Assembly (NCBI GenBank): GCA_047495785.1
Contig: JBLDXI010000028.1
Coordinates: 186,001-250,000, forward strand
Source of the DNA: Lepidodermella squamata
Taxonomy: Eukaryota; Animalia; Gastrotricha
DNA length: 64,000 nt
Direction: 5' to 3'
Below are positions 23,645 to 62,406 of this stretch, in pieces. Under the pieces are notes generated by a model. The model was not told the origin of the DNA. It saw only the letters and a list, made by a program, of their open reading frames with translations, and made no database searches. The translations under genes and the position numbers were made by a program. Every line of letters starts with the position of its first letter. Position 1 is the stretch's first letter.

Positions 23645-26593
23645 ATGGCGAAGGAAGTGCTGACGTTGCAGTTGGGCCACTATGCCAACTATGTTGGCAC
23701 GCACTGGTGGAACTTGCTGTTTGAAGATTTAACGGCGAAACAGACGATGGATGCCAGATCGCTAAATAATTCGGCGTTCGAAACCGAACCCGAGGCGTAT
23801 TTTCATAACGTGGGATCGGAGAGAAGCCAGGCCGTTCCGAGGCTGATCTCAGTTGATATTAAAGGTTCGATAAATTTTTCAAATTTCAAAAATACCCACA
23901 AAACTTGGAAAAAACTTCCTGTGAAAGACCTATCCAGGGGAATTAATTGGTCTCGTTTTGAAGCTTTGATACAACTGAGGCGGATGGTTCATCATGACAT
24001 ATTAAATGGAAAATTCAATTATTATTCACGTTTTTAGAATGCATCGGAGCTTTATCTGAATCTGGCCATTTCGCCCAGCCGAGAAATGATTCGAGCCTTA
24101 CAACCCCTCTTTGGCAGGGTGACACGCAAGTGGCTAGCCGTAGCCCGCTAAAGCGACACCTCGACACCGCCGAATCGCAGCAATCGAATAATGCGCTAGC
24201 TGATTCGAGCGTGAAAACGTGGTCTGATTATTTGGTGCCGCGCCTGCATGGCAAATCGCTGGTTCTACTGCCGAGTTCTTCAAGCCAGGATGAAACTGAT
24301 CTCAGACAGGATTCAGCTTCGTGGACCCTAAGTTTTGTAAGCAATTTTCCTAATAGTTTCAAACATTTTTATGCATGTTGTGAAATTTTGAAATAACTGA
24401 AAATTCGAGCTAATTGAGAAAAAATGGCTTGAACACTTGAGAACTCGAAAAATTGAAATTTCAAAAATATTCTCAGTGTAATTTGAAGCAGCAACAGACG
24501 AGGCGAAAATTCAGAAATAAAAAAACTAGTAACTTGAAATCGGACAATGAAAACCAATAAGGAGGACAATTTGAACCTGCTAATTCGAGGTTAAGCTGAA
24601 ATTAGTCTTCAAAATCAGAAGAGGTCATTCTGCGGAAGAAAAGTTCCGGTCAGAATTTTCGAACAAAGTAAGAAAAGGAAAAGTAAATTTAAATTCTTTA
24701 ATTTAGTTTGAAGAGAACTATAGAATATATTGTAACTATTTTTCAGCGTCGAGTGATGGATGAAATCGAAGAGCGGGTGCGGTACTTTGCCGAAGCGTGC
24801 GACGGCCTCGAAGGCTTCCACCTGCTGTCGACGATGCACGACGGGTGTTCACAGCTGAGCCACGATGTCCTGCAGTGGCTGGGCGATGACTACGCCAGGC
24901 GAGCTATCCTCCTCGCCCCGGTCGAACCCGCCCGCCTGCCTATGCGGTCGAGTACGACGACGAATTCTGGCATTTTGCCAGCGCAAAGATTGATCAACTG
25001 GGCGAGATTTTTGCCGGAGCTGTGGGCGAATTCGTCGCTACTGGTGCCGCTGTCGTTGTCAGGCGACAGTTTGTGGCAGGGGCCTGGTCTGAACACCGAG
25101 GATGATACCCCTCTACCGATCATCAACATACCTGGTATACGATATAACGTGAGTTCTGTTTGCAGTTTCGAGGGCATTCATGGACTGTTACTTAAAACTA
25201 GATTTCAGTTCCCAATTTTCACCGTTTCTTCAGTCTATGTTGTATTCAAATTTTGTCAAATTTGATTTTACGTTTAGGGTGACTCCAACTACCATACTTC
25301 GGCTGTGCTAGCCGCGGCTCTCGATACAGCCACCCTGCCGTACCGTTTGTCCAGCTGCGACGGTGCTGCCTACTCGCAACGACTTGGCATGTCCGAATTC
25401 TTTGGCGTCGGCTCGAAATATCTCAAGGTATGAAATATCATTAAAATCAGACACATCGAGATGAATTGAGATTGAGTTGAGCAAATGAGGATAGCTCCAC
25501 ATCTGAGTGAGTGTGTTGGCGCTACCTAGTTTTATCTAGTGAATATGAGGTGCCGTAGCAAAAGCTGAGCGAACCTAATAGTGGTAATCAGCTAGCTTGG
25601 GCTTCGAGTTCCAAGAGATATCGAAGCTTCATGTAGCTTTATTTCATTACCGAAAATGCTGTTGCATGGGTGGTAAAGACTTGAGGCTTCAAAATTTATC
25701 GTAAATTCCGATCAAATTTCCGGTAAAATTAACTACTTATTGGGGTTAATACGCACCCGATTCTTAAATTTAGCGCCTGAACTTGAAATGCGGGGTATGC
25801 GATTCGTCAATCTTCGAATCGAAAATCTGAGTAGGTGAAACACAGAAATCAAGCAAGTTTCAAGTAATCTTCGGTGACTTGTGCGGTTTCTTCCTACGAC
25901 TTGGCGAATGATGGGTGCAATCAATAGCTTCAATAGCCTCAACCTAGAAATTTAAACATTTGATTGAGCTCATTCTTTTCTGTTCTTTAGATTAACGAGA
26001 TGCAAGTGGTGCTGTCGTACCCGCTGAGGCAACCGCCCGGCCTCACGCCTGAACCAGTGAAACCTCTTGAAGTGACTTGGACCTCGTTATCGCCGCCTCC
26101 GATTTCTCAGTCGAAACTCAACTCGGCGAGTCACGGCAACAGCAACGCTCGCCTGCTGTCGCGATGCTGCACGTTGCGAGGCCTCGAATCACTGCCAGTC
26201 GCTGATAAATCGGCTTTCGCGTCGCCTGACATGCGTCGATTCTTGTTCACGAAGGCGGAACGCGATTTCGAGGCGACTTTAACGAAATCCCTACCAGTGG
26301 TTGATTCGTTCGTGAAAACGCACTGCAACCTGGTGGCCAAGTCGTTGTCTGTTAAAAGGCCGTTTCCTCGCTCGATTTTCACTGGACCCCGCAGCGATGC
26401 AACGGCGAAACCCATGGCTAGTGCGCTGGTGTCCTCAGGCGCGCATGTCGCGACGTTCCTCGGCAACCTGCATGGGCAATGTGAGCGGATGTCACGGTCG
26501 AAGCTAGTAACGGTGTTGCCCGAGTCGACCGAGTGGTCCGAACATCTCGAGTGGCTGGTAGACACGGTGCTGCGAGCTGAAAGTCTCAAATAG
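23645..26593 (+). CDS. MSTO1: Misato (tubulin/FtsZ-related, DML1/MSTO1), complete 5-exon copy (copy A)
   Basis: KEVLTLQLGHYANYVGTHWWN, PRLISVDIK, VKTWSDYL, EERVRYFAEACDGLEGFH, YHTSAVLAAALDTATLPYRL. Exons 23645-23864, 24038-24336, 24747-25148, 25278-25427, 25991-26593. Confidence 0.92.
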
Positions 26594-26873
26594 ATAAACT
26601 GTGATGCTACTATAGTTTTGCGCTATTATTTGTGATTTTTGCGCTGCACGAAAAACTACGCAAATATTTACAACGAAATACTTCGCTTTTAAATAGATTT
26701 TTAACTTGGTTTGGTTACAACTTCGCGCGAATGGCTACTGCGCCACCGGAAGCTGCGCAACCGAGAGGTCAAATTCATCAACTTCTGAAGAATTGCAAGT
26801 TTTTTCCGTACTAAAACAATACTTTTCACTGGCTGGAATTTCGATTAAATTATTTTGATGGCGTAAAAGTGAT

Positions 26874-26965
26874 GAGTCGGCTGAGTGAGTCAAACACCTG
26901 GAGTGGCTAGTTGATACGGTACAGCGAGCCAAAAGTCTTAAATAGATTAACTATGATGCTATATT
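26874..26965 (+). pseudogene. Decayed remnant of Misato exon 5 3' end
   Basis: GAGTCGGCTGAGTGAGTCAAACACCTGGAGTGGCTAGTTGATACGGTACAGCGAGCCAAAAGTCTTAAATAG aligns to 26522-26593 and into the 3' flank, with an internal TGA. Confidence 0.8.
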
Positions 26966-28308
26966 AATTTCATTTTTTGCATGGCGTGGAAAACTTGACA
27001 ATTATGTACTTATCATGTTTTTCTTTTCACATAGAATTTTACACAGACTGGTTTTATTTCGGCTTATTCAAATGGCGCCTGGGCACTGCTGGCCTCATGA
27101 CTTGTGATAGACGATTTGAACTATCAAAAATCTTATACGGCAATTTTGAGATTCGAACGTGAACACAGTGGCCTAGTGGTTAGGCACCTAGCATAGGTAG
27201 TGTGGTTCTAGTGAGTCACGGGCAACGGGCACTGATGTTTATTTCTTTCTCCGCTGAATTATTGCTTGTTCCATTTCCTCACTGTGTTTAACATATTTTT
27301 CGGGCAATAAACGGAATCATATTTTGAGGTACCTGTTGTGTTTTGTCTTCATGATTTGACTACCTGTCAAAAATTTTATAAATTATCGCTGATTGTTGGG
27401 AATTTAGAATGCATTGGAACTTTTTCTGGATCTCGTTCAGCCCAGAGAAATGAACCAAGCTTAGTTACCTTACGCAGGGTGACAATTGGTTGGCGAGCCG
27501 AAGTTCCGACCGCCGAGCTCTTCCAGCCAGGGAGATGGGCCGCAGAAAAGACGTAGAATTGGTAAGTAATTTTACGAATTGTGCTTTATTCGTGCTTTGT
27601 TGAAGTCCGAGTCGATTGAACGCTGTTTCAAATAGACCAAGCAAAATTGGGCATTCATCTTTTAACGAATCTGGAAAGTTCTGGCGTTTTTTTATGGGGC
27701 ACGAAATAAGAAAATGGGGGAAAATATGGCTAAATTTGCTTGTAATCTGAAATCTGGCTGACAGGCGCGTTTTGAAGCCAGGTATGAATGAACTGTGCCC
27801 TTAGTCGTGCCGAATTCTTTGCTTGCAATGAGAGTGGGATACAAAAGCCCAGGCTTATAGGGTCAAAAGAAACGAACCAGCCTTGATTCCAGTTCGGCCA
27901 ATTCTTCGAGAGTTTTTTGTCGAAATACTTTGTTGTTAACACATCCCTCTTCTCAATGAAATCCTAAAACGATCCTAAAATTCGGGATGGCCGATAGGTG
28001 AAGAGCATGATCCCATAAAATGTGTTAAATTATTTATTCAACTTTTTCAGGCAATTCATCATTTCATTTTGATCTGTTTTTTGACATTTTTTTTCGAAAA
28101 TTCCGAAATTAGTTGTATTTTTCCTGATGAACGAAAGGGACTCCATGGTGCATCTTCCAATTTTTTCAAAATGTATGAAAACTTCTATAGCGAATTGGTG
28201 GCCACAAAGAGTTGTATGATGATCGACTATGAACTTATGTTAAGCTTGACCGGCTGTCAAAAATAACTAAAATAAAAAGATTCTCTGAAAAAGTTTTTAA
28301 TCCAGCTA

Positions 28309-29073
28309 TACCGTAACGAGTGGTAACTTTGGACAAAACGTGTTTTTCAAACATTAAAAATCAGCCTTTGCTGCTAAATTTCTGAAATTTTCACCGAAGG
28401 TGGGGACGGTGATTCTTGAATTTACTGCAAATTTTGAGAATTTTGATAATTTTACCTGACCTTTGGCAAATTGAAATGTGTTCCGGTAACTTTGGACAAT
28501 TAGAGGGTAATTTTGGACGCTCATTTGCATATGCAATTTCATCGCAATTTCATTTTGAATAATAAGTTTCTCATGTTTTTTTCATTTACTCTTGGGTCAG
28601 ATTACGAAAGAAATTATGAGCATCATCTGTTTTTCAGAAGTTCAATAAAAATACATTTTTGCGCAGCCGCATACTTATACCGTCTAAAAGTGTCCAAAAT
28701 TACCCCCTTTTTCACCTGTTTTTCAGGTAAATGCCCTGCTAAAACGCGTCGACGGATTGCAATTTTTTCTTCGATTATAGGGAGAGTAAAGATAGGAGAA
28801 TAGACATGCCAACTTTTATTGAAAACTGATCGATTTTTAAAAAGATAGAAGGGGGTCCCAAAACGGCACCCAAAGTCTACCTGCTTGCAAATTTTTCTGA
28901 AATCCGATTTCAGCTCCAATCGTCTTGATTTTTATGTCAAACGAAAGCTGAAGAGACGGAGAATTGTATGCAAAAAATCCCACGATTTAAACATTGAATT
29001 CTGAAAAGCTAAACACCTGTTAAGTCGAAAGTGTCCAAAGTTACCGTGTCCACAGTCACCACACGTTACGGTA
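28309..29073. mobile_element. Non-autonomous Tc1/mariner(pogo)-like DNA transposon
   Basis: Termini TACCGTAACG.GTGGT.ACT.TGGACA and its reverse complement ...GTGTCCACAGTCACCACACGTTACGGTA, with TA at both ends and internal GGTAACTTTGGACA repeats. Confidence 0.7.
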
Positions 29074-29789
29074 ATATGAACTAACTTGATCTGAAAATTG
29101 CGAGAATAACCGAGGTTAAGGCATCAAGTGGTACGATGTACGATCCAGATGCCTCAATTTGGCAGAGTGACTTCTTTGTTAAAAAAAAATAGGCCGGCAG
29201 AAAATAATATTAAAAAATTGTTTTCCTTACTATTATGCCACTATAATTTCCACTTTTTATTACGCAAATTAACGGTTATTAATTTCATTCGATTTGCGAC
29301 CACGCTGGCATGACCTTGTCACGGGCTGTGCTGATTGTGGAGGTACTGCTAATTTTTTGATCGAATTTCGAGATGGCAATAATTTGAATTAAACTAATTT
29401 GAATAACATGTTAATTTGAATCAAACTTCACCAAGGCCTAATTCGGAATTCGGTTAAGAAAAATAGTGATTTTTCCTCTGTTGACTAAAATTCTACGATA
29501 AAATTAAAATAGAAGGAGCTACGTCGATTTTTTATCAGGGTTGCCAGCGTATATCTCAATAAAAACTCTGAAATGATTCAAATCTTGCGGGCTAGATTAT
29601 AAGCAACTAAATCTTCGAAAAATCATTCATTTTGGCCATATCTGAAGCCAAGTGGTCTTATTCGCTTTGCAATTAAAATTTGTTGCCGAAAATTAAAATT
29701 ATGAAAATTCTAAATTCTAAGAGAAAAAATGTCTGAAATAGGAAATCAACCAATCAATTAATAACCGATCGTTTAAAAAATAGGTACTT

Positions 29790-30047
29790 TCTGCGCCAGG
29801 GGATGAATGAAATCAAAGAAGCATGCGACGGCCTCGAAGGAAGTTCTCCCACCATCGCTGGGTGATGGCTGCTGCCGGTGCGGATTTCCCGGCTAAGAGA
29901 TGGATCGACCGGCCACATTTTTCGCCGGAATTATGGACGAATTCGTCGCTGCCTGTGCCGCTGTCTTAGCTAGCGGACAGGGCCTGGCCTAACCAGCGAC
30001 GACACCCGGCCATCAGCATACCAGGTATAAGTTATAACCTGAGTTTT
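29790..30047 (+). pseudogene. Decayed remnant of Misato exon 3
   Basis: GATGAATGAAATCAAAGAAGCATGCGACGGCCTCGAAGG, GCCGGAATTATGGACGAATTCGTCGCTG and CATCAGCATACCAGGTATA match 24755-25150 with deletions. Confidence 0.8.
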
Positions 30048-31070
30048 ATGTTAGATTTTCGGTAATTCATGACCTATTACTCGAACGACCTTGCAACCAA
30101 GATAAATACACTTATTTCCTCCATTTTGTTGTCTCTTGTCATCGCCTTTCAATATAAATGGCGTAATCGAAACGGAGTTGAATTGAAACATGCGAGGTCA
30201 TGATGAGTAACGTAATTCCACCTGGATGAGGTGAAACTTGGGCCGACTTCAAGCGCAGTAATGTTAGTGCGCACTCATGCCGGTCACGCAGGGTATTCTT
30301 TGTTTCGAATTAGGGTCACATCGATGTCTTGGTTTTAATTCGCCGCTTCTCACTTGTCAGCCGCTGGCTCCGTTGCTTCGTTCATCTTCTCGTACGTTTT
30401 CGAGTTTAAAAAATTGCGAGATTTATTTTTCAACCAATTCAAACAAAATTGTAAAATTTGAAATGATTTTCCTTGCGTATTTATTCTGGAAATTGTCGTA
30501 AATAATGTAAGAAATAGTACGTAAGAGTGAGTCAGAGGCCCTATTCTAGAGTTTTCTAGACTTCGCTGTCCGCCCGATGTTGATAAGGGTTTATGAAGCG
30601 TTTTTATTCGCCGTTTTTCACCGTGGATTTTTATTAGAATTCGAGTCTTGTCGTATAATCATTTTGCATTCCTTGTTTTCCCTCAGAATGTGAAATAACT
30701 TACAGCCACGGCGTGATGTGTTCTGCTATATCAACAACATTTCCACAGCTTTACGCTACTTTCCAAATCCTTCAAAATTCCGCTTATTGCAGCTTTCTGA
30801 GAGGCTCTAGGACAAGTCTATGTTGATGCTCATGATAGTAGATTAAATAAACCTGTGACTTAAGCAATAACCCAAGTAAGCTGCATTAGAAGATCAAAGC
30901 ACAAAGCCCAATGACCTTGAAATTTGTTTATAGTTCTGCTCTAGCTATTGCTAGCGCCCCACCAGATTTATGTTTTCTTTTTCCACGAGTTCTATCGATG
31001 CTAATTTCAGCTAATTTATTTTCTATCAGAATTTTCTAGCATTTTTATTCAAAATTTTAAATTTTCTATC

Positions 31071-32907
31071 ATGTCAATTTTTGCGGTACATGATTTTGAC
31101 CTCAACCGTTTTGACACAAACATCATGCAAATTAACCCTCTAATGCCGGCAGCTTCTCGGCTTTATACAAACTGAGTTTACTCAATCGGTCAAAACTGAC
31201 TCAAAATGAGTATATACAGCAATCTACGTGTGTATACTCAACCGGGACCTCATTTTTTGGACTTTGAATTATGAAACTGAGTATACACTTGTACCAATTG
31301 AGTTTACTCGTGCTAAAAAAATTGTATAAATACGCACTTGAGTTAACTCAGGAAGAGCGCAACATCACATGAATTTTATTCATGAAATTCTCAAAATCTG
31401 AAAAAATTGAAGAAATTGCCGTAAGTAGCCTAAATCAAAGGTCGACATGATTCGCCGGCACGACCAGCAGCTAAACAACAGCACAGGTAGATGCGGCAAT
31501 CGGCGGGGTTGCGGCGCGCTGATGAAAATCGCTGCGAAGCCGCAACAGGTACGGGCAATTTGTTACAAAAAGGCTAATAGTTTCAGATAAAACCATAAAT
31601 TAAGTAATATTGATGTGTGATTTTGCGCTCTTCCTGGCTCCCTTTTATTTCCGAGCAGGCATTGTGAGAAAGAGCTCAGTATTGAGCAACAATCGCGAGC
31701 TGATTGTTGTTACGCAACAGTGTGTTGCGCAACACCAAACCGCGACCTAAATGCTGGGCACCCCGAATTATTATTATTTACCACAAAACATTTAAAAAAT
31801 GACAGTAAATAAAGCTATCGGCACCCGGCATGAGTAAACTCAATTGGCAACTGACTTTACACACAACTGAGTCTAACCATTCACTCAAAACCGGCCGTCC
31901 GGGCGGCCGCCATGTGTTTATACAAAAAATTGATTGAGTATACACACAAATCATCCGACCACCTGGCGCGCGCACTCACCTGTGTTACGCAATCAACGCG
32001 CCGACTTTGCGGTTTTCGGAATCGGGGAGCCCTGATGGCCAACTACAAAATTGCCAAGCGGCTAGGCCGGCAAAAATCGGGAAGTATGAAAATTCAAGGT
32101 GAATAGCGCCAGTTTGAGTATACACGTTTTCGGCATTAGAGGGTTAATTTAGCCCTATCGCGTGGCTATGCTGTTGACGCTGCTCGGCTTTCGAGCATTA
32201 TCCGTGATGTATTGGAAAATTCGGCCTTGGTGGGTTTCAGTGATCATCTGGCCGGTCAGCTTGAACTCTATGTAGATAAAAAACAGGCTAGTCGGCTTAG
32301 CCCGGAGCAGCGTAAAGATTTTTTGCGAACACTTAACGAACACCTGGTTTCGCTGAAGAATGCTACTAGTAACAAGTTGCAGTCTTGCAAGTTGTTAAAG
32401 GGCTTGCCGCAATACCCGCTGACCTACCTTAACAGAACCATGAGTTTTCGAGGAAATGATCTGTTCCCGAATTCAAACTGCACCACGGCTATTTTCATGT
32501 GCCACGGAAGGTTAGATGGAGACAGTTTCATGGTAGAATGGGAGTGCCCAACTCGAGATCTGCAACCTGATTACAAACCTATACGCCAAAGCCTCAACCG
32601 TGAACAATCGGCTATCAGAACTAATCCCATTCAAACGTATATTCGAAATTGGGTGTATAAAGTTATCAAAGAGAAATGGAATAACAGACATCTAATTCTG
32701 ATTCTTATCGCGGAGGGAGGAGCCGCAGCTGTCGACGACTACGCGGCGTGGGTCGCGATGACTAATGCCGATGTTGAGTTGGAAAATAGAGGCTGCAGTG
32801 TGACGCTGAATGCTGGCGAAGTCTATGACTGCATGGAGCTGTTCCTTTGGCTTTATGAGCGAGGCCTATTGCCTGGGCAACCTCCTGGCGATATCATCTG
32901 GAATTGA
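31071..32907 (+). pseudogene. Orphan family member 1 (about 274 aa when reconstructed), interrupted by a piggyBac-like element
   Basis: ATG 31071-31135 plus 32148-32907 read as one open frame (MSIFAVHDFDLNRFDTNIMQINLALSRGYAVDAARL...) once 31136-32147 is removed. Shares motifs with the ORFs at 50867 and 54642. Confidence 0.7.
31136..32143. mobile_element. Non-autonomous piggyBac-like element (1008 bp)
   Basis: TTAA|CCCTCTAATGCCG ... CGGCATTAGAGGG|TTAA: 13-bp TIRs, CCC/GGG termini, TTAA TSD, internal TGAGT(T/A)TAC repeats, no transposase ORF. Confidence 0.9.
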
Positions 32908-34441
32908 AAATAGCACAAACAACCTAATGATCAAGTCCACCGTGTCAAGCTCTTCCATACTGATAATCAAACTGTCATCACGTCCTGATTGGTACTAGCA
33001 AGAAATTTAGCTTTGTCTGGTCTGATAATTAATTGTGATAGTCGCTAAAAACCGGTGATATATATATTGCTATATATAGTAGTCAGTAGTCAGAGCAAGT
33101 TTTGAGCAGTCGTAATTCCCGGTTTTGTGTGCTGATGTTCATTTTTTTCGGAGATGTAAGCTGCAATCTTGTCTCTTCGTGTTGTGGCAGCCTGTGCTGA
33201 AGACAATAAAGAGGACCGCAAGCTACTTGTGTTTTGTGAAAATAATTGCTTGAGGTGGTTCAAGTTTTTCGGAGGTCTTGCGATGAAGACCCCCTGCCAA
33301 AATTAAAATCAATTGTAATTTTTGCACCATAAGGGAATTTTCATCAGTTCGGGGTGGCGATTCCAATAAGTGATTATCAGAGCAGCATTGATGAATAAAT
33401 TTGCTTGCTATTTACCGAGCAATAAATGGCTTACATTTCTGTGCCTCATTTGTAGCTTTTTTAGTTTCGACGCGTTTCAAGGTCGCCAAAATCTGTGCGC
33501 CCGCTGGAACATCTGGATCAAGCTGATAGCTCGCGGTCTGGGTCTTCATTATTGTCGCGGTGGGTTATATCAGCGATAGAAGGCAATTTTTTATTGTAAA
33601 ATTTCATTTCGAAAGGAAGAATGAACAATTAAATTAAAATCAAGGTTCCGCCCGGAAGCCAAGTCAACTCCTAAAACGAGACTGACATTTATTCATCTGA
33701 ACCGAAAGTTAAGCCTATATTTTATAGAAATTTATATACCTATTGCAGATGCGATTTGGGCTGTTTTCGGGCCTAAATAATTGGTTCTGACCTCGTTATG
33801 TGCCTCGAAGGGGTCCCCCACAGAGCAGCAGGCTTCAAAGCAGGGTAAACGCACACTACAGTCCTCCCAGTCTCACATTTTTGTCAATATTGGGGGAAGG
33901 GGGAGGGTTATTTTCGAAGCCGTCTTTATCGATATTCCATAGATTATTCCATAATGTCAACTTCATAACAGGTATGATTTCCGAACAAAACATCAACTTT
34001 ATTTTACTAGAATGAGTTCTATCTCGATAAAGTCGTCCAGCCTCGCCTTAACGGCCAATTTTCGTCCGAAATCGAACGCTTCGACTTCAAAAACACGGGT
34101 CGACCTAATTGTATTATGAATCATAGCGTACGTCACGGCTAATCAATCTGAAACTGCGCGACAATCTGCGCCTGGTTTTTCCTTCAGATAAAGCCAGCTT
34201 TATTCGATAAAATTGACTTTTCGGCTAATGTCGAAAATGGACATCTTCGAAGATAGCAAGCCGTCTTTATAATAATACGTCTTTATAATAATTATAATAA
34301 TAGCAAAACGGCGGACAAGTGAACCGTGAGTTCCAGAACGATCAAGACTTCGACCCACACCACCGTCAATCGTTCGTCAACATGACTCGCGGCAGCCAAC
34401 GACATCAATCTGGCGGATACTAGCACTACTCCACCGGCCCG

Positions 34442-37228
34442 GTGTCGAAAACTGGTAAATCATTACTGAATGACAATGCTAATGTGATAATTTCTCCCCC
34501 AAGTAACAACTATGATTTTTTGTTTCTCAATTTTATAGCCTGGAACATATTTAAATTTAGACCAGAATCTTTTCCTGAAATCATACTGTTATTGAAAAAA
34601 TTTCTTATTGTTGCCCTTCTAGAAACTTGGCATGATTCCAAATTTGTGCCGCCCTCTTTGCGTAAAGAATTTTTTGTTATTCATTCACCAGCTAAAAAGC
34701 TAAATAATGTGAGAGGTCGTAATTTGTCAGGAGGAATTATCGTTTACATTAACTCATCTCTCAAATCAATAATCAAAGTCTTATATAAATCTAGCTACCT
34801 GGTTGTTCTCAAAATTGATCTACCTGATTTTACCCTGCTATTGGCTTTCTGTTATATATTACCGGAAAAAAATGATACGATTCAGCGAAAATCGTTGAAA
34901 ATTGCTACCAAAAAGAAAATTTCTACCAAAATTTCTAGTAAAAAACAGTACAGTGGTCGTTTCAAAAAGCTCTGGGCCGAGACCACCAACAAATTGACTG
35001 AAATTAAAAATAATATTCGCATTGAAAACCTCCAGTCCCAAAAAAGGATTGAAATTATTATTATGGGCGACCTCAATATTCGCACTGGAAATTTAAATAG
35101 GACCTACGACAACCTAGACCCAAACTCGGACTTCTTCTGCAGTCACGTGCCTCCCAGAAACTCGAAAGATATTGAACTGCCCAAATGCGCTGCTTCAAAT
35201 CGTAATTACTTTTTTGAAAAGCTGGACGAAATTGGGCTTTACATCGTGAATGGGACCACACCATCCGACCAGCTTGGAGAATTTACCCATAAAAAACTCG
35301 GTGATAACCACAAACAGGCATTCACAGTCGTCGACTATGCTTTGGCGACCGAAACCCTCGCCGGGGAAATAAACGATTTTGAAGTTGTTATTAATGGGGG
35401 AATCTCAGACCACTACCCGATAGGCCTCAGCCTCGCTAGAAAAATCAAACTTAGCAATACCGACCACAGTTTTGATGATGACAAAGTCAATTTTCGAGTT
35501 AATAAGCATCAATTTGCATCACTGTGGGAGCACTTTCAGTTGAGAAACGCGCACAAAATCACTGACGAATTATCAGTACAAAACTTGTTACTGACACTCT
35601 ACAAAGTTGGCAAGGAAGCTTTGTACATCCGTAAACCCAAGCCAGAAGCCGAATCTTCTAGCTCATTTTTCGACGAGGAATGCCACTCAAAGAGGGCCCG
35701 GCTTAGAAAAGCTAGAACCCTATCAATTAGGCACCCCAATAATCCAGCATTTAAAGCAGACATGGATCAGGAGGAGAGAGAGTACCGCTATCTCCTTAAC
35801 CAAAAAAAGCAACAAAAAGAATCAGAACTTAAAGCCGAGGCTATCGAATTTTCAGAACTAATTGAACTCTGCCCTGCTGATTTTTTTAAGCTCGTTAAAG
35901 AGTACAACCGTTGGAAAGAACTTGATACCAATCTTGAGATGCCCTCACCCACTGAAATCATAGACGCAGATGACTTGGTCCTGATGGCCGAAAACCCCGA
36001 AAACTTACAAAAGTCACTCGATGAACTAGCTTCCTACTGTGACGACAACTCCCTTAAAATTAACGTTGAGAAAACTAAAATAATGATTTTTGAGAAACGT
36101 TTTTCCGAAAATATCAACCTAAAATTTACTCTCAACGGTGAATCTATTGAACGAGTAAAAGAATTTAAATACCTAGGCGTTTATTTCACGCATAATTTGA
36201 ATTTCGACAAAATGGTGGAGGTTATCAATGCGAATACAAAACGTATAACCGCACTGATCCCGAACATGATAGAGAATTTTACTACTTATCTTCCACCGAA
36301 AACATTTAATATTTTACACAACTCATACGTCATCGGCAACTACACTTATGCCAGTGGCCTCTGGGGCCAGACAAAAAAGAATAAAGTTTTCTCATTTAAC
36401 ACCCATTTCGTGAAACAAATTTGTCGAATTCCAACCTCTGCTAGGAATGAACTAGTAAATCGCGAATTCTACCTCGACCCACCTGCACTTGTCCTCACAA
36501 AATCAGCCGTCAGGTACTTCCTACGACTCAAGTTTGAGAACGAGCATGTGCTTATCAAAACTGCCTTTGACGTTATTGACGCAAATAAAAATCTATATCG
36601 CCATATTTTCAAACATTTACAAAGTGATGTCGAAAAACTTGGGGGCACCAACATCTTCACCGCCACTTCTCAATTTGAGGGTTTGGCTCATCTTGGAAAG
36701 TGGTACGAAGTGTGGATAACAAACAACAAAAAATCTATAGCTAATGATTTAAAAACTATATACCAAAATCCTGTTTTTACAGACGAAAATTTCGACAAAT
36801 TGCTGCTATATTCTAATGCTCAAAATGCTTTTTGGTCGGTGAAAAATATTAGGATACTCAGTATGATTAGGACAAACTCTCTCCATAAACCCTTTTGCTA
36901 TATCAATAACTTAGGATTAAAATGCATTTTCTGTCTTAAACATGGTGATTCGCTTGCTACGCCTATTAGAAATTTCCAAGATACTATAGATCTAATATGC
37001 CACCTCTATATTGAATGTAAATTTATCCCGAACCACACTCCTCTAACACAACTAGCCTCGATCGATAGTATCAATCATAATGTTAATAATTTTGTCAATT
37101 CAATTATCGAATCCATAGTAACTTGCAAATCCGTCAACAATATCGCACTGCCACACATCTTAACTATAGCTTCTAACTACCGACTCGCTCTTAAATTACA
37201 CGTTTACCCTAACAGTAATAACAATTAA
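34442..37228 (+). mobile_element. Non-LTR retrotransposon (LINE) ORF2: APE endonuclease plus internally deleted reverse transcriptase
   Basis: APE motifs IAWNI, LLETW, MGDLN, VVDYAL, SDHYPI. RT retains only ADDLVL, LKINVEKTKIM and FKYLG onward. C-terminal C-x2-C..H..C. AATAAA plus a (TTGC)n tail at about 37462-37484. Confidence 0.88.
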
Positions 37229-38072
37229 TGCGTAATTCTCCTGTCCTCTCTTTTCTGTCTTCGCCAATTTATTTAAATAATTCCCACGTCATGATCAGAA
37301 CTATATGTATTATAACTTTATATTATGTATTATAACTTATATTGTAACTATATGTTATGCACGTGTATGTATACATATATATCTGTCTGTGTTTATTATG
37401 TTCGAAAATATTCCAGGACGCGCCCAAAGCCGATGGCCGGTGCTAGTTTGCTTTTTTGATCAAATAAAACATTGCTTGCTTGCTAATAATACTTTTGGGT
37501 CCAGTACCTTCATAATTGCCTTTATAATAGTATCAAATTGAGCTGACTTCATTGATAGATTCGACTTCAACATAAGGTCTGCTTCGAAATTAAATTTAAT
37601 CGAAAATGAAAATGTTGCAAAAATACTTATGCTGAAACATTTTCGGGAAAATATTGAACATTTTTTTTGGCAATTCTATTGAAAATCACGAAATTATTGG
37701 CCAAAGCAGGTTGTTTTGCTGCTGAATAATTGACGCTATCAGGCCTACTCCACGGGTTAGTTCCGCTAAAAGTATAAGAGCCTTTGCAAACAATCGGTAA
37801 GTAATCACTTGAAAAAATATTTTTAATCTTATATGGAAAAATGCCATGATTTGATATAAAAAGTAGACATTTTTCAATCTAAAACCCAAGATGAAGATAA
37901 CGGCTTCGGCATTTGGTTATTGGTAGCTGTGATTTATTATCGAAGCCAAATAATCGTATTACTAGGATGAGGGCGTTTGACCTCGCTAACAGTCTAAAGT
38001 GTAGGAAGTTGTGGTCGGAAATGCATCAGAAAGCTTTAGGCGTGAGCTAAGTATAACAATGTTTGAAAAAAA

Positions 38073-41000
38073 TCGTGGACCCTAAGTTTTGTGAGTAATT
38101 TTCCTCATATTTTCAAACATTTCCATGCCTGCTGGGCAAATTTGGAAAAAAATGAAAATTTGAACTAAAATTGAGAGAAACAATGAAAGCCTATAATGAG
38201 GAAAATTGCTAATTCGCTAATTTTTATGTAGAAAGAATCGTTTGAAGGGAACTAGAAAATATATTGTAACTATTTTTCAGCGTCGAGTGATGGATGAAAT
38301 CGAGGAGCGGGTGCGGTACTAAAAAATTGAAATTAATTTACCTATCTAAATTGTTTGCCAAAATTTATCTATTTATTTTAAAATGAATTTAAAATAAAAA
38401 ATCAGCCGTTAAGAGTCTTTACGTAAAGAATGAGGTAGCTGTAAAAATCGATGGGAAGTTATCAGAATTTTTCTACGTAAATAGAGGCCTCAGACAAGGA
38501 TGTCCTTTATCGCCACTCCTTTTTATCACCACTTTCAATAAAATATGTGAAAAAGTAGCAAATGAAAAAGCCGGGTTTCCGTTGGGAAAACATTTTCTTA
38601 ATATTTTGGCTTTCGCCGATGATGGAACGCTGTTAGGCATGAATCACAACGAAATTAAGCTGTTATTAGGAATTTTCGACGCGGCTTGTAAAGAACTGGG
38701 TCTCAAAATTAACGCGGCGAAGACGCAATAAGTATATGATTATAGGAGGTGACCCAAAGAGAAATGAAAAATATAATTTGCAATTAGAAGGAAGCAAACT
38801 TGAAAAAGTAAGCACGTTCAAGTATTTAGGTAGCATTATAACTGATGATGGCAAACTCAGCCAGGAACTTATAGCACGCATTGCGAAAGCAGGTAGCTGT
38901 TTTGGCGAGATAAGCAAATTTATGTGCAAACATGTCTCTTTGGCCGTAAAATAAAAAATATTAAAATGCGTTATTATTCCAGCATTGATGTATGCCTGCG
39001 AGTCATGGAATATTACTGAAGACGAAGAAAGTGCGCTAAATACCCAAGAATATAGGTGGCTGCGATGCATCTTAGGAATTACAGTAATGGACTATATCCC
39101 TAACATAGACATTAGACTATCAATGTGTGGCGGAATAATTGAAGTCGGTAGATTAGATAAAAACAACGCCTAAATTACCTAGGACCTAGGACATATAATA
39201 AGGATGGAAACGTATGTCGACGATGAAGATGACCCGATACCACCGGGGCCAGTTTACGACCTTTACAGGTGGGTAGCGCCTAAGAAATGGCAGAGACCGG
39301 TGGAAAGACCTCGAACTAGGTGTCTCGATTCGGTAGAAAGAAGTTTAAGAAGAGTGGGTCTTACAGCCGAAAATATAATAAGGAAAAAAACTGACGGGTC
39401 CCGTGGCAGACCTCGTAAAGATGGTAGTAATATAACCGAAATTTTCGAAATAACTGTTAACTGGACATTGACCGAAACAACTGCACTAGATCGAGACGAA
39501 TGGCGTAAAATTGTCGAGACTTTTGAAGATTTTGAATTTTACAACAAAAGCAAGATACTCTCGGACGTGGGGGCGGTTGACTGATTCTTTTGGTTTGCCT
39601 TGCCTTCGCCTTCCTCAGAACCCGAAAGGGTATAGACGCTCAGTCGCGGGGAAGTGAAACAATAAAATCATTTCATTTTATTTCATTAAAATAAAAATTG
39701 CCTAAATTTAAAATGAATTTTGATTTTATTTTTCAGCGTCGAGTGATGGATGAAATTGAAGAGCGGGTGCGGTACTTTGCCGAAGCGTGCGACGGCCTCG
39801 AAGGCTTCCACCTGCTGTCGACGATGCACGACGGGTGTTCGCAGTTGAGCCACGATGTCCTGCAGTGGCTGGGCGATGACTACGCCAGGCGAGCTATCCT
39901 CCTCGCCCCGGTCGAACCCGCCCGCCTGCCTATGCGGTCGAGTACGACGACGAACTCGGGCATTTTGCCAGCGCAAAGATTGATCAACTGGGCGAGGTTT
40001 CTGCCGGAATTGTGGGCAAATTCGTCGCTGCTGGTGCCGCTTTCGTTGTCAGGCGACAGCCTGTGGCAGGGGCCTGGCCTTAATACCGAGGATGATACCC
40101 CTCTGCCGATCATCAACATACCCGGTATACGATATAACGTGAGTTCTGTGTACAATTTTAAAGGGATTCATCGCCTGTTACTTAAAACTAGATTTCAGTT
40201 CCCAATTTTCACCGTTTCTTCAGTCTAGGTTGTATTCAAATTTTGTCAAATTTGATTTTACGTTTAGGGTGACTCTAACTACCATACTTCGGCTGTGCTA
40301 GCAGCGGCCCTTGATACAGCCACCCTGCCGTACCGCCTGTCCAGCTCCGATGGTGCAGCCTACTCGCAGCGACTTGGCATGTCCGAATTCTTCGGCGTCG
40401 GCTCGAAATATCTCAAGGTATGAAATACAAAATATGAAATCAGACCCATCGAGTTGAATGGTGATTGAATTGTTGCGCAAATTTGAAGGCTTCAAAATCT
40501 GAGTGCCTTCTGATTTCGTCTAATAGCGAATCTTAAGTACCGTAGCAAAAGCTGAGCAAACCTAATGATAATCAGCTAGCTTGGGCTTCGAGTTCCGAGG
40601 AATATCGAAGCTTCATGGGGTTTCATTTCATCGAAAATTCCGATGACTGGTAAAATTAACTACTTAATTGGGCTTGACATGCTCTGGATTCTTAAATTTA
40701 ACACTTAACTTGAAATGCGATTCTTCCATAATCGAATCGAAAATCAAAGTAGGTGAAGCAAAGATATCAAGTTTTTTCAAGATGCCTTTGGTCGGTTTCT
40801 TCCGGCTAATTCGCGCATAATTGAGAAAACCCTAAAAATTGAAACAATTGATTGAGCTTATTCTGTTCTTTCTGCCGTTTTTAGATTAACGAGATGCAAG
40901 TGGTTTTGTCGTACCCGTTGAGGCAACCGCCCGGTCTCACGCCAGAACCAGTGAAACCCCTGGAAGTGACTTGGACCTCGTTATCACCGCCTCCGATTTC

Positions 41001-41487
41001 TCAGTCGAAACTCAACTCGGCAAGCCACGGCAACAGCAACGCTCGCCTGCTGTCCCGCTGCTGCACATTGCGAGGTCTCGAATCACTGCCAGTCGCTGAT
41101 AAATCGGCTTTCGCGTCGCCTGACATGCGTCGATTCTTGTTCACGAAGGCGGAACGCGATTTCGAGGCGACTTTAACGAAATCCCTACCAGTGGTTGATT
41201 CTTTCGTGAAAACGCACTGCAACTTGGTGGCCAAGTCGTTGTCTGTTAAAAAGCCGTTTCCTCGCTCGATTTTCGCTGGACCCCGCAGCGATGCAATGGC
41301 GAAACCCATGGCCAGCGCGTTGGTTTCATCTGGCGCGCATGTCGCGACGTTCCTCGGTAATCTGCATGGGCAGTGTGAGCGCATGTCGAGGTCGAAACTG
41401 GTAACAGTGCTGCCGGAGTCGACCGAGTGGTCCGAACACCTCGAGTGGCTGGTCGACACGGTGCTGCGAGCTGAAAGTCTCAAATAG
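38073..41487 (+). pseudogene. Second, 5'-headless copy of Misato (last 18 nt of exon 2, intron 2, exons 3-5; copy B) with open exons
   Basis: 38073-38092 is identical to 24319-24338, and homology continues through intron 2. Exons 39737-40138, 40268-40417 and 40885-41487 are open, have intact splice sites and encode a nearly identical protein. Confidence 0.9.
38400..39690 (+). mobile_element. 5'-truncated, decayed LINE (RTE-like) reverse transcriptase fragment
   Basis: GLRQGCPLSPLLF, LAFADD, FKYLGSII and LMYACESW motifs with stops. AATAAA plus a (TTTCA)n-like tail near 39660-39690. Lies between 50-bp direct repeats 38271-38320 and 39727-39776. Confidence 0.85.
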
Positions 41488-42120
41488 ATAAACTGTGATG
41501 CTATATATTTGCGCCATTATTATTTGTGATTTTTTTGCGTTGCGCGAAAAACTGGACAATTATTTACTCCGAATTGTTTTCTTTCTAAGTAGAGTTTTGC
41601 GTAGTCTGGTTTTGTTTCGGAATATTTCGGCTGGTTTTATCTCGCTGAGCCGGGAAATGAACCAAACTTGGTCACCCTGCGCTGAACCTAACTGAAATGA
41701 GTTTGTAAGTGGCTATCATGTCGAATTATTTCTTAGAAGCTACCCTCAAACCGAATTTAAATCCGCCGAAATTTAATTTACAGTCCGAAATCTCCAGAAC
41801 CTAAAATCACAGAACCTAAAATTGTCAGTATAGAGTATAGATCAATGAAAATTAAGCCGTTGCTTCATAAAAGTCCAGAAAGTTTAAGCGATTGCTCATT
41901 TGGCTCAACTTAACTCGAAACTAGCTCAGGCGCCTTTTGCAGCAAAGTTCGAAACCAACACAGCCTATATTGGTACGATATTGTCTAATCTCTCGAGTCT
42001 TCAATGTAAAGAAAATGGAGATCTAAATTTGTCCTGGAACTTGATTAACACATTTTCTTTCATATTGGACTTCGAAAATCGAATTACCAGATTTCTTACA
42101 ACAAAAATATATTTCTTAAT

Positions 42121-42525
42121 TTTTCAGCGCCTGGTGGTCTTATAAGCCTTGCAGGCTAGTATGTTGCCGAAAATTAGATAGAAAATTTGAAAATTCTAAG
42201 GGAAGAAACAGTGAGAAGTCCAAACCACGGCCAAAAGAGACAAATTCTGAAATGAGCCGATGGAGAAATAACTGATCTTTAAAAAAATGGGCATTTTCAG
42301 AACCGGGTGGATGAAATTGAGCCACGATGTCCTGCAGTGGCTAGGCCCTGCGAGCTATCCCTACTCGCCCCAGTTGAACCCGCCCGCCTGCCTGTGCGGC
42401 TAAGTTCGATCGACAGGGCGAAGTCGTCGCTGCTGTGGCCGCTGTCGTTGTCCGGTGGTAGGTTGTCGCAGGGGCCTGGTCTAAACACCGATGACGATCA
42501 CACCCGGTATAAGTTAAAACGTGAG
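42121..42525 (+). pseudogene. Decayed Misato exon 3 (older copy C)
   Basis: GAGCCACGATGTCCTGCAGTGGCT; the translation LLAPVEPARLPVR...LSLSGGRLSQGPGLNTDD matches exon 3 with deletions and frameshifts. Donor remnant AAAC|GTGAGT. Confidence 0.85.
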
Positions 42526-43324
42526 TTTTGTATGACATTTTCGGTTATTCATGACCCGACAGACTGACCTTGCTGCTATTGAAAATAAAAGATTTGTTTT
42601 CCTCCCATTTCTTTCCCTCTTGTCATCGCTTTTCATGGCGCAATATGGCGCAATCGGAATAGGCGCTGAATTGAGGCGGGCGAGGTCATGCCGGCTGACG
42701 TAATTCAACGTAGATGAGGTGAAACCTGAATCGACTTCTGACACAGTCATCTTTGAATTTTAGGGCGCGCTTCTTTTAGACAGGCCACGCAGTGTCTCCT
42801 TTGATTTGAGTTAGGGTCACAGCGCTCCTCAAGTTTCGATTCACGGCTTCGCACTAGGCGGGCGGTTGATTCTCATTTATCTCCCCGCCCGTTTGAAAAA
42901 TCTCGCGGATTTGGTTTTCAACCGTTTAAATTATGTTTCAATATGTTAAGATGATTTTTTCTGCATTTTATTCTGTAATTGTGGCAGATAATAGGCACTA
43001 AGGTGAATCAGGCTATAGAAAAATCTAGAGCCTTCTATCCCGATGGTTGATGGATACGTGGGCCCATAATGATGGCTTTTACCTATCATTTCATTTCATT
43101 TGATTTTTTTCCAATTTGAACGACTATTTTAGCTGCTTAGTTATGTTTCGGCTACTAAACTTGCTTTTTGTTTCACCTTCGGCCTTCGAATGCGAAACAC
43201 TCCTTTCCTATTTTGAAGCCGATATGAGGGGGCAATCATGTGCATGCATTACCGCATTACCCTTCTTATTAAGAGGTGCCTCCTGAACGTTTTGCAACAA
43301 AATGATGAATGTTATCATTGGTTC

Positions 43325-46068: not shown

Positions 46069-46338
46069 TACTTTTAGCGGAACCAAATTGTTGCGGAACC
46101 AAATCCGCATGTCGCGGAACCTAATTTTAGATGAGAAAAAGGTCGATTTTCAAATATTTCCACGAAATTAAGGCAATTTATGAATTCTATACTAAAATGT
46201 GCGTCTTATACAGAATTTCACGCTGAATTCAAACGTAATTTATTTTAAATTATGCCGATCAATAATGACATCCTTATAACTTTCGAAAATGGGGTTTGGG
46301 CACACGGAAAATTCCAAAATTTGGTTCCGCTAAAAGTA
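46069..46338. mobile_element. MITE with about 21-bp TIRs
   Basis: TACTTTTAGCGGAACCAAATT ... AATTTGGTTCCGCTAAAAGTA, with internal GCGGAACC repeats. Confidence 0.7.
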
Positions 46339-46559
46339 AGACCCATTTACGAGGGACTGACATTTATTTATCCGAACCAAAAGTTGAATGCCTAGGTAAC
46401 CATAAAGGCATTCTATTCCCTGATACTACGTATTTTGACCCAATAAATTGGTCCCTCACTTTTCGAAGTGCCAAGAGTAGAAGTTATATCCAATCAAAAT
46501 GGCTGAAAATGATCTGGGTGCAAACCACCCGAACGGGGGCATCCAGGTATAAATTATAT

Positions 46560-49700: not shown

Positions 49701-50514
49701 CCACAACAAAATGCGAGGGAAAACATTTACAAGAAGTTGATTACTCGAAATTGGATTTCTTATGATGACAAATGAGAAGTTTTTTTATGGCCAGGATGGG
49801 TTTAAACCAAATAAACTCGGAATTTGTTATGATCATACCGGCATTTTGCGCCTTTCTCACGATGTTTTCCCACGATGCTTATTGCCGTAATTGATTTTGA
49901 AATCCCTGAAATCAAACTGTTTTGCCCCAATCAAATCGTTATTCTTTCAAATCAGTCCCTGAAATCAAATCACATCTAAAAAAGGTCTGAAATCGTGAAA
50001 ATCGAAATCTGAAAAATCAAATCCCCAACACTGCTCAGTTGAGGCTGCTTAGACCTCAGCAGAATTGATAAGTTTCATGTGTTCTTGCTGTAGAAAATGA
50101 AATGACTCGCGGGAAATCAAAACATTTTGGTCGCCTAATTTCTCGATATCGGCTTCCGATTGTTTGAATTTCACAACAATATTCAAATTTTTCCTATAGA
50201 TGTATGAACAGTTTGATGGGCAATGAGAAAAATGGACGGTTCCCGTTTGCGCGTCTTATTTTGCGCGACACGCACCATGCATATGCACCATGTGATAGTC
50301 GAGCAGATCGCGAGAAAAATGAAAGCGTGTTTATATGGCGGAAAAAAGCTGAAAAACGCTGAAATACACTTTTCTCGTCTGGGAAGTGCTGAAATTGTTA
50401 GCTGAAATGTGCCTCTATTGATACGAAAGATAACCTGAAATCATTTGCCAGCTTATTTCAGCTTATTTCGTGCCGGTCTGGGTAACAGTTCAGCTGATCC
50501 AATGAATTCTACCT

Positions 50515-50775
50515 GTTCTGTTCTTTAGATTAACGGCATGCAAGTAGTGCCGCTGTACAAGTTGAGGCAACCGCGTGGCCCCACGCCAGAAGCAGTTTTA
50601 AACCACTTGAAGTGATGTGGACACCGCCTCCATTTCCGAAGTCACAACTGAATTCGGCAATATTCATCGCAACGGCAATGCTCGCCTTGCCGCCTGTTGC
50701 GTCGCTAGACCTGCGTCAATTTTTGTTCACAAAGGCTTAACGCGAATTCGATGCGACTTGAGCGATATCCCTACC
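50515..50775 (+). pseudogene. Decayed 5' part of Misato exon 5 (copy C), acceptor retained
   Basis: CTGTTCTTTAG|ATTAACGGCATGCAAGTAGTGCCGCTGTAC..TGAGGCAACCGC and CGCAACGGCAATGCTCGCCT align to 25980-26295. Confidence 0.85.
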
Positions 50776-50866
50776 CTTCTAATAGCAGTTTGCGACAGGT
50801 TTATGTTCGATTTTTAGTAAATTTTCTGTCTTTTCCGTAGATTTTTAAGAGTAATTTACGATTACG

Positions 50867-54400: not shown

Positions 54401-54547
54401 TTGCATGAGCAGTGAGCAGCTGATGCAGGTTTTCGAGGTCGAAACCAGTTGCCACGGTGTTGCCCGAGTCCGAGATTTCCGAACGCCTCAAGTGGCTGCT
54501 CGATACGATGCTGTGAGCTGAAAGTCTCAATTGAACACGGCTGTGAT
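54401..54547 (+). pseudogene. Decayed 3' part of Misato exon 5 (copy C)
   Basis: CGGTGTTGCCCGAGTC...CGAACGCCTCAAGTGGCTGCTCGATACGATGCTGTGAGCTGAAAGTCTCAA aligns to 26511-26590. Confidence 0.85.
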
Positions 54548-54641
54548 TTCAATTTAGGACGAATACTATATTAGCATTTGTGATGCTTGTGGTTAATGAC
54601 ATTAAAGTTGGATTGCAATTTTCTAGATTTTTTGAACTATC

Positions 54642-61850: not shown

Positions 61851-62406
61851 GCGCACGGGTTTTGAAACATTCAGCGATACGGCGGAAATTGAATTAAATT
61901 GGCGTCTTCGTCATGAATAAATAGAACACGCATAATCCCGTTGTCTTGAGGCTTATGTTTGAAATCTATTGTCGGCTGTACGGATTATGATGGCTGTAGG
62001 GGAAGCTAGTTGTAAACTTCACTCGAATATTAACAATGCTTTCACCTCATCAATGAATGATCATGAATTTCAAAATCGATTACATGATCTGAAAAACGGA
62101 AATGCATCAAGCACGCACATGGAGTAAAATTTCATGATATGACAGAAGGTTGCCCAGTAAGGATAGTAGAACAAATAATTGACGCTGATTTAATTAATCT
62201 GTGGATGCGCCAAGATATGACCTAGTTCAATCTTTTTTCATTTCGTAATTTGAAAAACACTGACATCGAATTATACAATTCAGCGTGGACGTTCCACAGA
62301 TATTTACGTGTTTGAAAAGCTCAGTTTTAGTCCGATGATACTGTTTCGTCTATTCTTGACTCTTGAGCAGTTCGATCAGACCGAGACTTTCATTCGGTCG
62401 TTTCCA

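Follow-up and report, generated by a model that had tools for sequence, protein, structure and literature searches.

The stretch of DNA analysed here, hereafter the window, comprises 64,000 nucleotides of the gastrotrich Lepidodermella squamata (assembly GCA_047495785.1, contig JBLDXI010000028.1, positions 186,001 to 250,000 of the forward strand; all coordinates below are counted within the window). It contains a complete misato gene, termed copy A, and a second, 5'-truncated misato copy, termed copy B, which lies on the same strand and starts about 11 kb downstream of copy A. Copy B cannot now encode a full protein, yet both 3' halves evolved under purifying selection.

The gene model of copy A was built from reading frames and splice sites; the frame is consistent, and every intron has GT..AG ends. 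The end of exon 2 and the start of exon 3 are both in phase 0. The exon 1 region (23645-24037) matches the N-terminal Misato segment II tubulin-like domain (Pfam Misat_Tub_SegII, PF10644; E 3.1e-15, 56.9 bits against a cut-off of 26.5), and exon 3 alone scores 29.6 bits for Tubulin_3 (PF14881), just below the 30-bit cut-off. Residues 2-557 of the predicted product align with residues 4-509 of a misato homologue, P0001, at 39% identity (E 3e-134); P0001 is the sole clear relative found among 1.84 billion protein representatives. By its predicted N-terminal domain and its collinearity over the full length, copy A is assigned to the misato / MSTO1 family. In the same protein collection the nearest relative of the exon 5 product is 41% identical and belongs to a cluster without a name. 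Hence there is no close species for synteny or for calibration of the ratio of non-synonymous to synonymous substitutions per site (dN/dS). The exon 5 products of copies A and B have no exact match on record in public assemblies, a scan of metagenome contigs found no relatives, and a search of the published literature found no description of this case.

Copy B was delimited by self-BLAST and a MAFFT global alignment, in which 24319-26702 (block A) is homologous to 38073-41598 (block B) on the same strand. The homology begins abruptly: the 20-mer at the two block starts occurs exactly twice in the window, at 24319 and 38073 (0 occurrences expected by chance), and the 70-nt stretches that precede the two starts show no relationship (72% mismatch). 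The junction lies 18 nt before the exon 2 donor site. The exon 2 tail of copy B (38073-38090) is identical to that of copy A at 18 of 18 positions and is followed by a retained donor, GTGAGT, and by an intron 2 start that is 83% identical; judged from the alignment, tail, donor and intron start are conserved as in a working gene. The exon 3 acceptor of copy B is T-rich and ends in CAG, introns 3 and 4 have GT..AG ends, and the phase is compatible with exon 2. The upstream part of the gene is missing. No second exon 1 was found in the window by tblastn and nhmmer, and copy B accordingly has no N-terminal domain; the same searches found no second exon 2 of the B type, the only additional exon 2 sequence being an old decayed fragment at 27.4 kb. 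The spacer of about 590 bp directly upstream of copy B (37485-38072) has no match to misato, to the 5' flank of copy A or to the rest of the window (BLAST with word size 7, nhmmer --max). An N-terminal extension reading into the exon 2 tail is blocked by an in-frame TGA 7 nt upstream of it, and the sole possible start of a stand-alone product is a methionine in exon 3, in the middle of Tubulin_3 (profile position 58 of 180). Lacking exon 1 and the bulk of exon 2 and preceded by an in-frame stop codon, copy B cannot at present encode the full protein.

The reality of copy B was assessed with contigs derived from the reads of three public runs (assembly word 31 nt), which were compared with the 6,000 letters at 37000-42999. 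One run, X1, is even over introns and intergenic DNA and thus DNA-like; it may stem from the source sample. Four of its contigs (37453-38287, 40400-41016, 41267-41484 and 41474-42999) match the window with 0 differences at depths of 45-59. The first of these, 835 nt long with depth 45, crosses the junction at 38073; since the homology shared by A and B at the junction is 20 nt and thus shorter than the assembly word, this contig genuinely bridges it. A 2060-nt contig (depth 52, 0 differences) crosses the right end of copy B at 41598. Depth is 58-59 over B-specific sequence, 42-54 over A-specific sequence, 45-52 over the unique flanks and 100 over a merged stretch where A and B are identical; the equal depths indicate that A and B are each present once, at the depth of unique DNA. 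In one A-type contig the differences are precisely the 23 that separate A from B over its interval. The truncated copy looks homozygous in X1. The window contains no N, and the linkage of A and B across 26.7-37.4 kb is that of the assembly. A further X1 contig on 41037-41223 (depth 42) shows 17 differences from copy B where copy A has 5, which hints at a third misato exon 5-like sequence elsewhere in the genome.

Table 1. Coordinates of the misato copies and of other features in the window
Feature	Position	Strand	Remarks
Misato copy A, complete gene	23645..26593	+	5 exons (23645-23864, 24038-24336, 24747-25148, 25278-25427, 25991-26593); 557 aa
Block A, well-conserved repeat	24319..26702	+	last 18 nt of exon 2, introns 2-4, exons 3-5, 3' untranslated region (3'UTR)
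Block B, 5'-truncated second misato copy	38073..41626	+	exon 2 tail through 3'UTR (to ~41626); exon 3 39737-40138, exon 4 40268-40417, exon 5 40885-41487; open frames, splice sites kept
Unique spacer directly upstream of copy B	37485..38072	.	no homology; in-frame TGA at 38064-38066; X1 depth 45, single copy
5'-truncated fragment of a non-LTR (long terminal repeat) retrotransposon (reverse transcriptase), 1.4 kb, in exon 3 of copy B	38321..39726	+	Pfam RVT_1
Long interspersed nuclear element (LINE)	34442..37484	+	intact 928-aa open reading frame (ORF) at 34442-37228 (endonuclease and reverse transcriptase), repeated 3' end; Pfam RVT_1, Exo_endo_phos
T, old decayed exon 5 tail and 3'UTR	26874..27068	+	nearer to the 3'UTR of copy B than to that of copy A
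D, old dead partial misato copy	27399..30578	+	exon 2 start remnant 27399-27534; exon 3 remnant and flank 29644-30578
C, counterpart of D downstream of copy B	41638..43044	+	weak exon 2 remnant 41638-41684; exon 3 remnant and flank 42126-43044
Weak collinear match to 46316-46472	33637..33804	+	nhmmer E 8e-4, weak evidence
C5, frameshifted exon 5-like remnant	50513..50821	+	46 nt upstream of 512-aa ORF
Ct, exon 5 tail remnant	54427..54554	+	upstream of 451-aa ORF
Long intronless ORFs, distant paralogues	32212-32907, 50867-52405, 54916-56271	+	31% over 74 aa (E 1e-7); 25% over 159 aa (E 7e-5)
ADP-dependent glucokinase exon, neighbour gene	20435-21187	+	PF04587, E 1e-63; best public match 48% identical; named matches of 45-47% from a stick insect, a spider and a priapulid
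Rhodopsin-family receptor ORF, single exon, 394 aa, neighbour gene	60672-61856	-	

The divergence between the two copies is almost exclusively synonymous. Exon 3 has 19 synonymous and 0 non-synonymous differences and encodes an identical peptide, exon 4 has 10 and 1, and exon 5 has 35 and 3. Pooled over exons 3-5 there are 64 synonymous and 4 non-synonymous differences (dS 0.26, dN 0.0047, dN/dS 0.018), and the four amino-acid differences sit in segments that are variable or gapped relative to P0001. The 1155 coding nucleotides contain 0 insertions or deletions (indels) versus 352 gap columns in the introns. Introns 2 and 4 show about 21% mismatch in their alignable part plus large indels, the 3'UTR 27% mismatch, and intron 3 is well conserved at 7.8% mismatch. 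The base changes between A and B are symmetric (32 strong-to-weak, 29 weak-to-strong), the G+C content of third codon positions is 0.67 in both copies, and the copies have 119 and 114 CpG dinucleotides, in a genome of about 42% G+C; copy B is therefore without the drift expected of dead DNA. An earlier note on this DNA, made from the sequence alone, had reported the abrupt start of homology, the lack of exon 1 and most of exon 2 in copy B, the heavy divergence of intron 4 and the identity of the exon 3 peptide, all of which hold, and its hand counts for exon 5 prove exact.

Changes on the two branches were polarised, the outgroups being the older dead misato fragments present in the window. 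Fourteen changes are B-derived and 12 A-derived, all of them synonymous, and 6 are ambiguous. The similar numbers suggest that the two branches are about equally long. The probability that 14 of 14 changes are synonymous by chance is roughly 0.3^14, and this pattern places the branch of copy B itself under selection at the protein level. With at most 4 changes at 861 non-synonymous sites, copy B can have been unconstrained for at most ~0.011 substitutions per site, less than 8% of its branch. None of the signs of a decaying pseudogene (dN/dS near 1, frameshifts, stop codons, base drift) was found in copy B, its only lesions being structural, namely the 5' truncation and the retrotransposon. 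The proposal of the earlier note that both 3' halves evolved under purifying selection, and that copy B did not drift freely, is thus borne out by the dN/dS of 0.018, the purely synonymous changes of the B branch, the symmetric base changes and the equal third-position composition.

Two tracts of very low divergence interrupt an alignment that is otherwise 6-21% diverged. The first covers the first 218 nt of exon 3 (24747-24964) and has 3 A/B differences (P 0.0002). The second, at 25189-25312, covers the 3' part of intron 3 and the start of exon 4 and has 2 differences in 124 nt, including 1 in the 89 nt of intron 3. These tracts indicate that A and B exchanged sequence after their split, by gene conversion or recombination. 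The first tract predates or spans the insertion site of the retrotransposon.

The retrotransposon fragment in exon 3 of copy B is recognised by its reverse transcriptase match (RVT_1, 38393-38728, E 2.4e-16). It is flanked by a 50-bp duplication (38271-38320 and 39727-39776, 2 mismatches) that holds the acceptor and the first 39 nt of exon 3. The right-hand copy of the duplication leaves a complete exon 3 with its acceptor; the left-hand copy constitutes a decoy acceptor with 39 nt of exon sequence running straight into TAA. The depth of X1 over the fragment, which reaches about 4300, identifies it as a high-copy repeat.

Expression was examined in run X2, which comes from another study and carries another organism label; over several exon contigs, one allele of X2 does not differ from the reference. 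Splicing shows X2 to be RNA, since intron 4, with GT..AG ends, is absent from one contig and exons 3 and 4 are connected through loose ends. The misato exon contigs of X2 are all A-type, with depths of 50-60, some of them with 1-2.6% further differences. No B-type exon mRNA was found in X2, the only RNA data set, the A state accounting for all depth at each A/B site listed; contigs drop rare variants. On 39857-40139 and 41217-41534 the X2 contigs comprise two A-type exon variants 2-2.6% apart, one of which has 3 of 14 A/B-differing states in common with copy B. The species looks highly polymorphic, and alleles that arose by B-to-A conversion may be segregating.

Low-depth X2 contigs (2.5-7) cover 37800-38399 on both sides of the junction, and neighbouring unique DNA has none. 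The 5' edge of copy B may hold a weak promoter or give rise to a non-coding transcript; the truncated copy is probably present in the X2 sample too and its 5' edge weakly transcribed. In this interval many contigs fold back onto the opposite strand, and the sequence has a TATA-like motif at 37773 and, at 37797, a consensus donor (CGgtaagt).

Copies A and B are surrounded by older dead misato copies, which were found by tblastn, BLAST and nhmmer within the window. The two partial copies D and C are 65-68% identical. They have internal deletions in common, and past the exon 3 donor both continue in sequence unlike intron 3 of A and B, so they are copies of one dead ancestor. Lacking exon 1, this ancestral copy begins where exon 2 begins, which means that an earlier duplication here had likewise lost its 5' part at a point within the gene. 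On the same strand, A, T and D follow one another in an order that B and C repeat, with collinear pairs at 26973-27068 and 41531-41626 and at 29644-30578 and 42126-43044. Weak collinear pairs are found at 27429-27477 and 41638-41684 and at 33637-33804 and 46316-46472, the last being similarly spaced from D and from C (3.1 versus 3.3 kb). As read from these pairs, the duplicated unit would comprise at least ~6 kb of the locus itself, and probably 9.5 kb or more. The unconstrained parts of the units are 65-75% identical or no longer alignable, which makes the duplication, or the split of the units, old. The end of the first unit (37485-38072) has no counterpart at the end of the second unit or elsewhere in the window by nhmmer; it may have been lost or become too diverged. 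The ORF at 32212 has no counterpart downstream of C.

The LINE is a later insertion between A and B. The depth of X1 over it is ~850-925 up to ~37.45-37.48 kb, where the other genomic copies diverge, and its 3' end amounts to ~18 copies by depth; the family is probably active or recently active. The three paralogous intronless ORFs match no Pfam family. Two of them lie just downstream of misato exon 5 remnants, and the 451-aa ORF has only a weak caspase-like lead, with a score of 0.87 in a language-model search.

We favour a reading in which copy B is the remnant of a second, full-length misato gene, and give it a probability of about 40%. The locus would have undergone an old segmental duplication, the unit consisting of misato and the already dead older partial copy downstream of it. 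Both misato copies would have remained protein-coding for a long time, accumulating ~0.26 synonymous changes per site that are split evenly over the two branches, and would occasionally have swapped short tracts by gene conversion. Very recently copy B would have lost exon 1 and most of exon 2 in a deletion or rearrangement with its right-hand limit at 38073, and it would also have taken the retrotransposon insertion in exon 3. Copy B would then be a pseudogene caught at birth, copy A alone now making the protein. The record of earlier dead misato copies at the locus (T, D, C, C5, Ct) supports this reading.

Several observations weigh against it. We infer that copy B formerly had its own exons 1 and 2 and that their loss is recent; since the window yielded no relic of an exon 1, exon 2 or 5' flank of the B type, the 590 bp upstream matching nothing, the former full-length state is purely deduced. 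Copy B may have been partial from birth, as the older copy ancestral to C and D was born without exon 1. The reading also requires that copy B is observed shortly after its inactivation. The two halves of the target duplication differ at 2 sites while the frame of copy B is intact, a hint that the insertion is not brand new, and the homozygous appearance of copy B in X1, together with the low-depth coverage of the junction region in X2, fits a long-standing truncation better.

The main rival is that copy B is still functional in place and that selection on it continues, which we regard as possible but rather unlikely. It would serve either as an alternative 3' cassette, spliced to exon 2 past the poly(A) site of copy A, or within a transcript of its own, headed by a new 5' exon or a trans-spliced leader or fused to a gene further upstream. 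The state of the coding sequence is what such a function predicts: the frames are intact and the splice sites canonical, dN/dS and the 14 synonymous changes of the B branch speak of constraint, and codon usage shows no decay. Splicing of exon 2 to exon 3 of copy B would read through in phase 0, and the target duplication happened to leave a whole exon 3 with a good acceptor. Its halves have meanwhile diverged at 2 of 50 sites with the ORF still clean. This reading needs no coincidence of timing and fits the apparent spread of the truncated form. On the other hand, the A and B products differ at only 4 of 385 residues, so that a minor isoform would be hardly visible to selection, and if the exon 3 acceptor alone were used, the conservation of the exon 2 tail, its donor and the 5' part of intron 2 would be unexpected. 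The decoy acceptor upstream leads into a stop codon. Translated on its own, the B protein would begin within the Tubulin_3 fold, behind a leader with an in-frame stop codon and several upstream ATGs. The low-depth transcription at 37800-38399, absent from adjacent unique DNA, with the TATA-like motif and the donor at its edge, agrees with a transcript of copy B; against this, X2 yielded no B-type exon contig where A-type depth is 50-60, which is moderate evidence, as contigs drop rare variants. The earlier note had held that abundant splicing of exon 2 to exon 3 of copy B would point to a maintained alternative 3' cassette. No such abundant product was seen in X2, where all misato mRNA is A-type; a minor B-type mRNA could escape the contigs.

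A second alternative, which we consider quite improbable, is the recent joining of two long-separated haplotypes or lineages, either by unequal exchange or by insertion of the 3' half of one allele with its downstream DNA into the other, displacing the resident 3' end. Such an event would account for the equal branches and the purely synonymous divergence without a function for the truncated copy, the species seems highly polymorphic (the exon variants of X2 are 2-2.6% apart), and the nested remnants T, D, C and Ct can be read as earlier displaced ends. The magnitude of the divergence, however, is far beyond that known between alleles in animals: dS is 0.26, mismatch reaches 27% in the 3'UTR and 32-35% between D and C, and most intergenic sequence cannot be aligned, so that haplotypes 25-45% apart at neutral sites would be needed. 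No A-only or B-only haplotype was seen, and the depths of A and B in X1 are equal. Unequal exchange further predicts a partner of 30.6-38.07 kb after C, and the ORF at 32212 and the 590-bp spacer have none.

The insertional form of this scenario had been preferred in the earlier note, which compared the 3' half and about 11 kb of downstream cargo to a prokaryotic island that regenerates the gene it enters. Part of this 11-kb segment is homologous to the DNA that follows copy B, and it is therefore a copy of the resident flank, repeated in order, and not foreign. No recombinase or integrase was found in the scanned ORFs of 26.7-38.07 kb (Pfam; some short ORFs were left out), which contain just LINE enzymes and an ORF of unknown family, and no end-marking repeat of the segment was found besides the duplicated gene itself. 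Neither these results nor the exchange of sequence between A and B support the comparison, and the non-coding parts, 65-68% identical or unalignable, are far past the divergence plausible between alleles. A repeated version, in which a divergent functional 3' half with downstream DNA joins exon 2 time and again and pushes the previous half downstream, giving the layers A, B, C/D, T and Ct, appears very doubtful; if true, animals would have, in such recurrent replacement of the misato 3' end, an equivalent of gene-restoring integrative islands or silent-cassette systems.

An assembly artefact, with haplotypes or a contaminant concatenated, is highly improbable. The two units are similar enough to pass for alleles, and continuity over 26.7-37.4 kb is beyond proof from the window by itself; still, concatenation by the assembler, for which the earlier note had named halved depth and a lack of reads over 38073 as the mark, is largely ruled out by X1 contigs across both ends of copy B and by the like depths of A, B and flanks, with 100 over the merged stretch. 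The absence of N from the window and the non-misato flank upstream of copy B, which is thus no plain allele of A, agree with this. Least probable of all is a long-dead copy B whose exons owe their likeness to A solely to recurrent gene conversion: the two tracts of very low divergence exist, but a dead copy would gain ~1.5 non-synonymous changes per synonymous one after each conversion, conversion frequent enough to screen B would have wiped out the dS of 0.26, and the observed ratio of 4:64 and the 14 of 14 synonymous B-derived changes rule it out.

The closest known situation is the birth-and-death of tandem or segmental gene duplicates, with one duplicate caught just after its inactivation. 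The locus resembles it in having same-strand local copies of several ages, the older of which have decayed by frameshifts and internal deletions, and in the conversion tracts between the two youngest copies, one of which is 5'-less and bears a retrotransposon. It differs in that the truncated copy shows no point decay (dN/dS 0.018, 0 coding indels) at a dS of 0.26, from which it follows that either the death of copy B falls within the final few percent of its history or the copy has not died. The human pseudogene MSTO2P originated by segmental duplication. Human MSTO1 and MSTO2P are a misato gene and a transcribed pseudogene at 1q22 (PMC13447663, for name, location and exon count). As in that pair, the gastrotrich locus has a local duplicate in the same gene family with one copy classed as a pseudogene; the event is independent and in a distant lineage, and MSTO2P is multi-exon and near full-length, unlike copy B, which is cut inside exon 2.

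Blocks of alternative 3' exons that arose by tandem duplication and are joined to common 5' exons are known from Drosophila mod(mdg4) and lola, and clusters of mutually exclusive exons are comparable. The misato locus has duplicated same-strand downstream exons with intact acceptors, compatible phase and selection on both sets as well. The Drosophila blocks, however, encode different modules, whereas here the products would be 99% identical and B-type mRNA did not appear; the two sets are also separated by a complete terminal exon and its 3'UTR, by 11 kb of DNA and by a LINE. Prokaryotic integrative islands and prophages enter a gene at its 3' end and bring a substitute for that end with them (attL/attR). 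An intact gene, a distant displaced partial 3' copy and an abrupt start of homology inside the gene are common to both cases. In contrast to such islands, the misato locus has no integrase or recombinase in its scanned ORFs, the repeat spans at least 2.4 kb of the gene and continues as a collinear flank, the intervening DNA includes copies of the locus's own flank and an ordinary LINE, and the divergence fits old paralogues. The likeness to alternative 3' exon blocks and to gene-restoring islands thus exists only in outline.

The misato locus of L. squamata comes closest to ordinary birth-and-death, with one unusual property, a 5'-less copy with a dN/dS of 0.018 on its own branch. A copy that is unable to encode the full protein, although its own branch has been under strong selection at the protein level, offers a clean test case of a rare kind. 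The locus captures either the first moment of the birth of a pseudogene, with structural lesions preceding point decay, or a 5'-less exon block that continues to be used, for instance as an alternative 3' end. It is also a warning that such copies are not always assembly artefacts, as read-derived contigs confirm both ends here.

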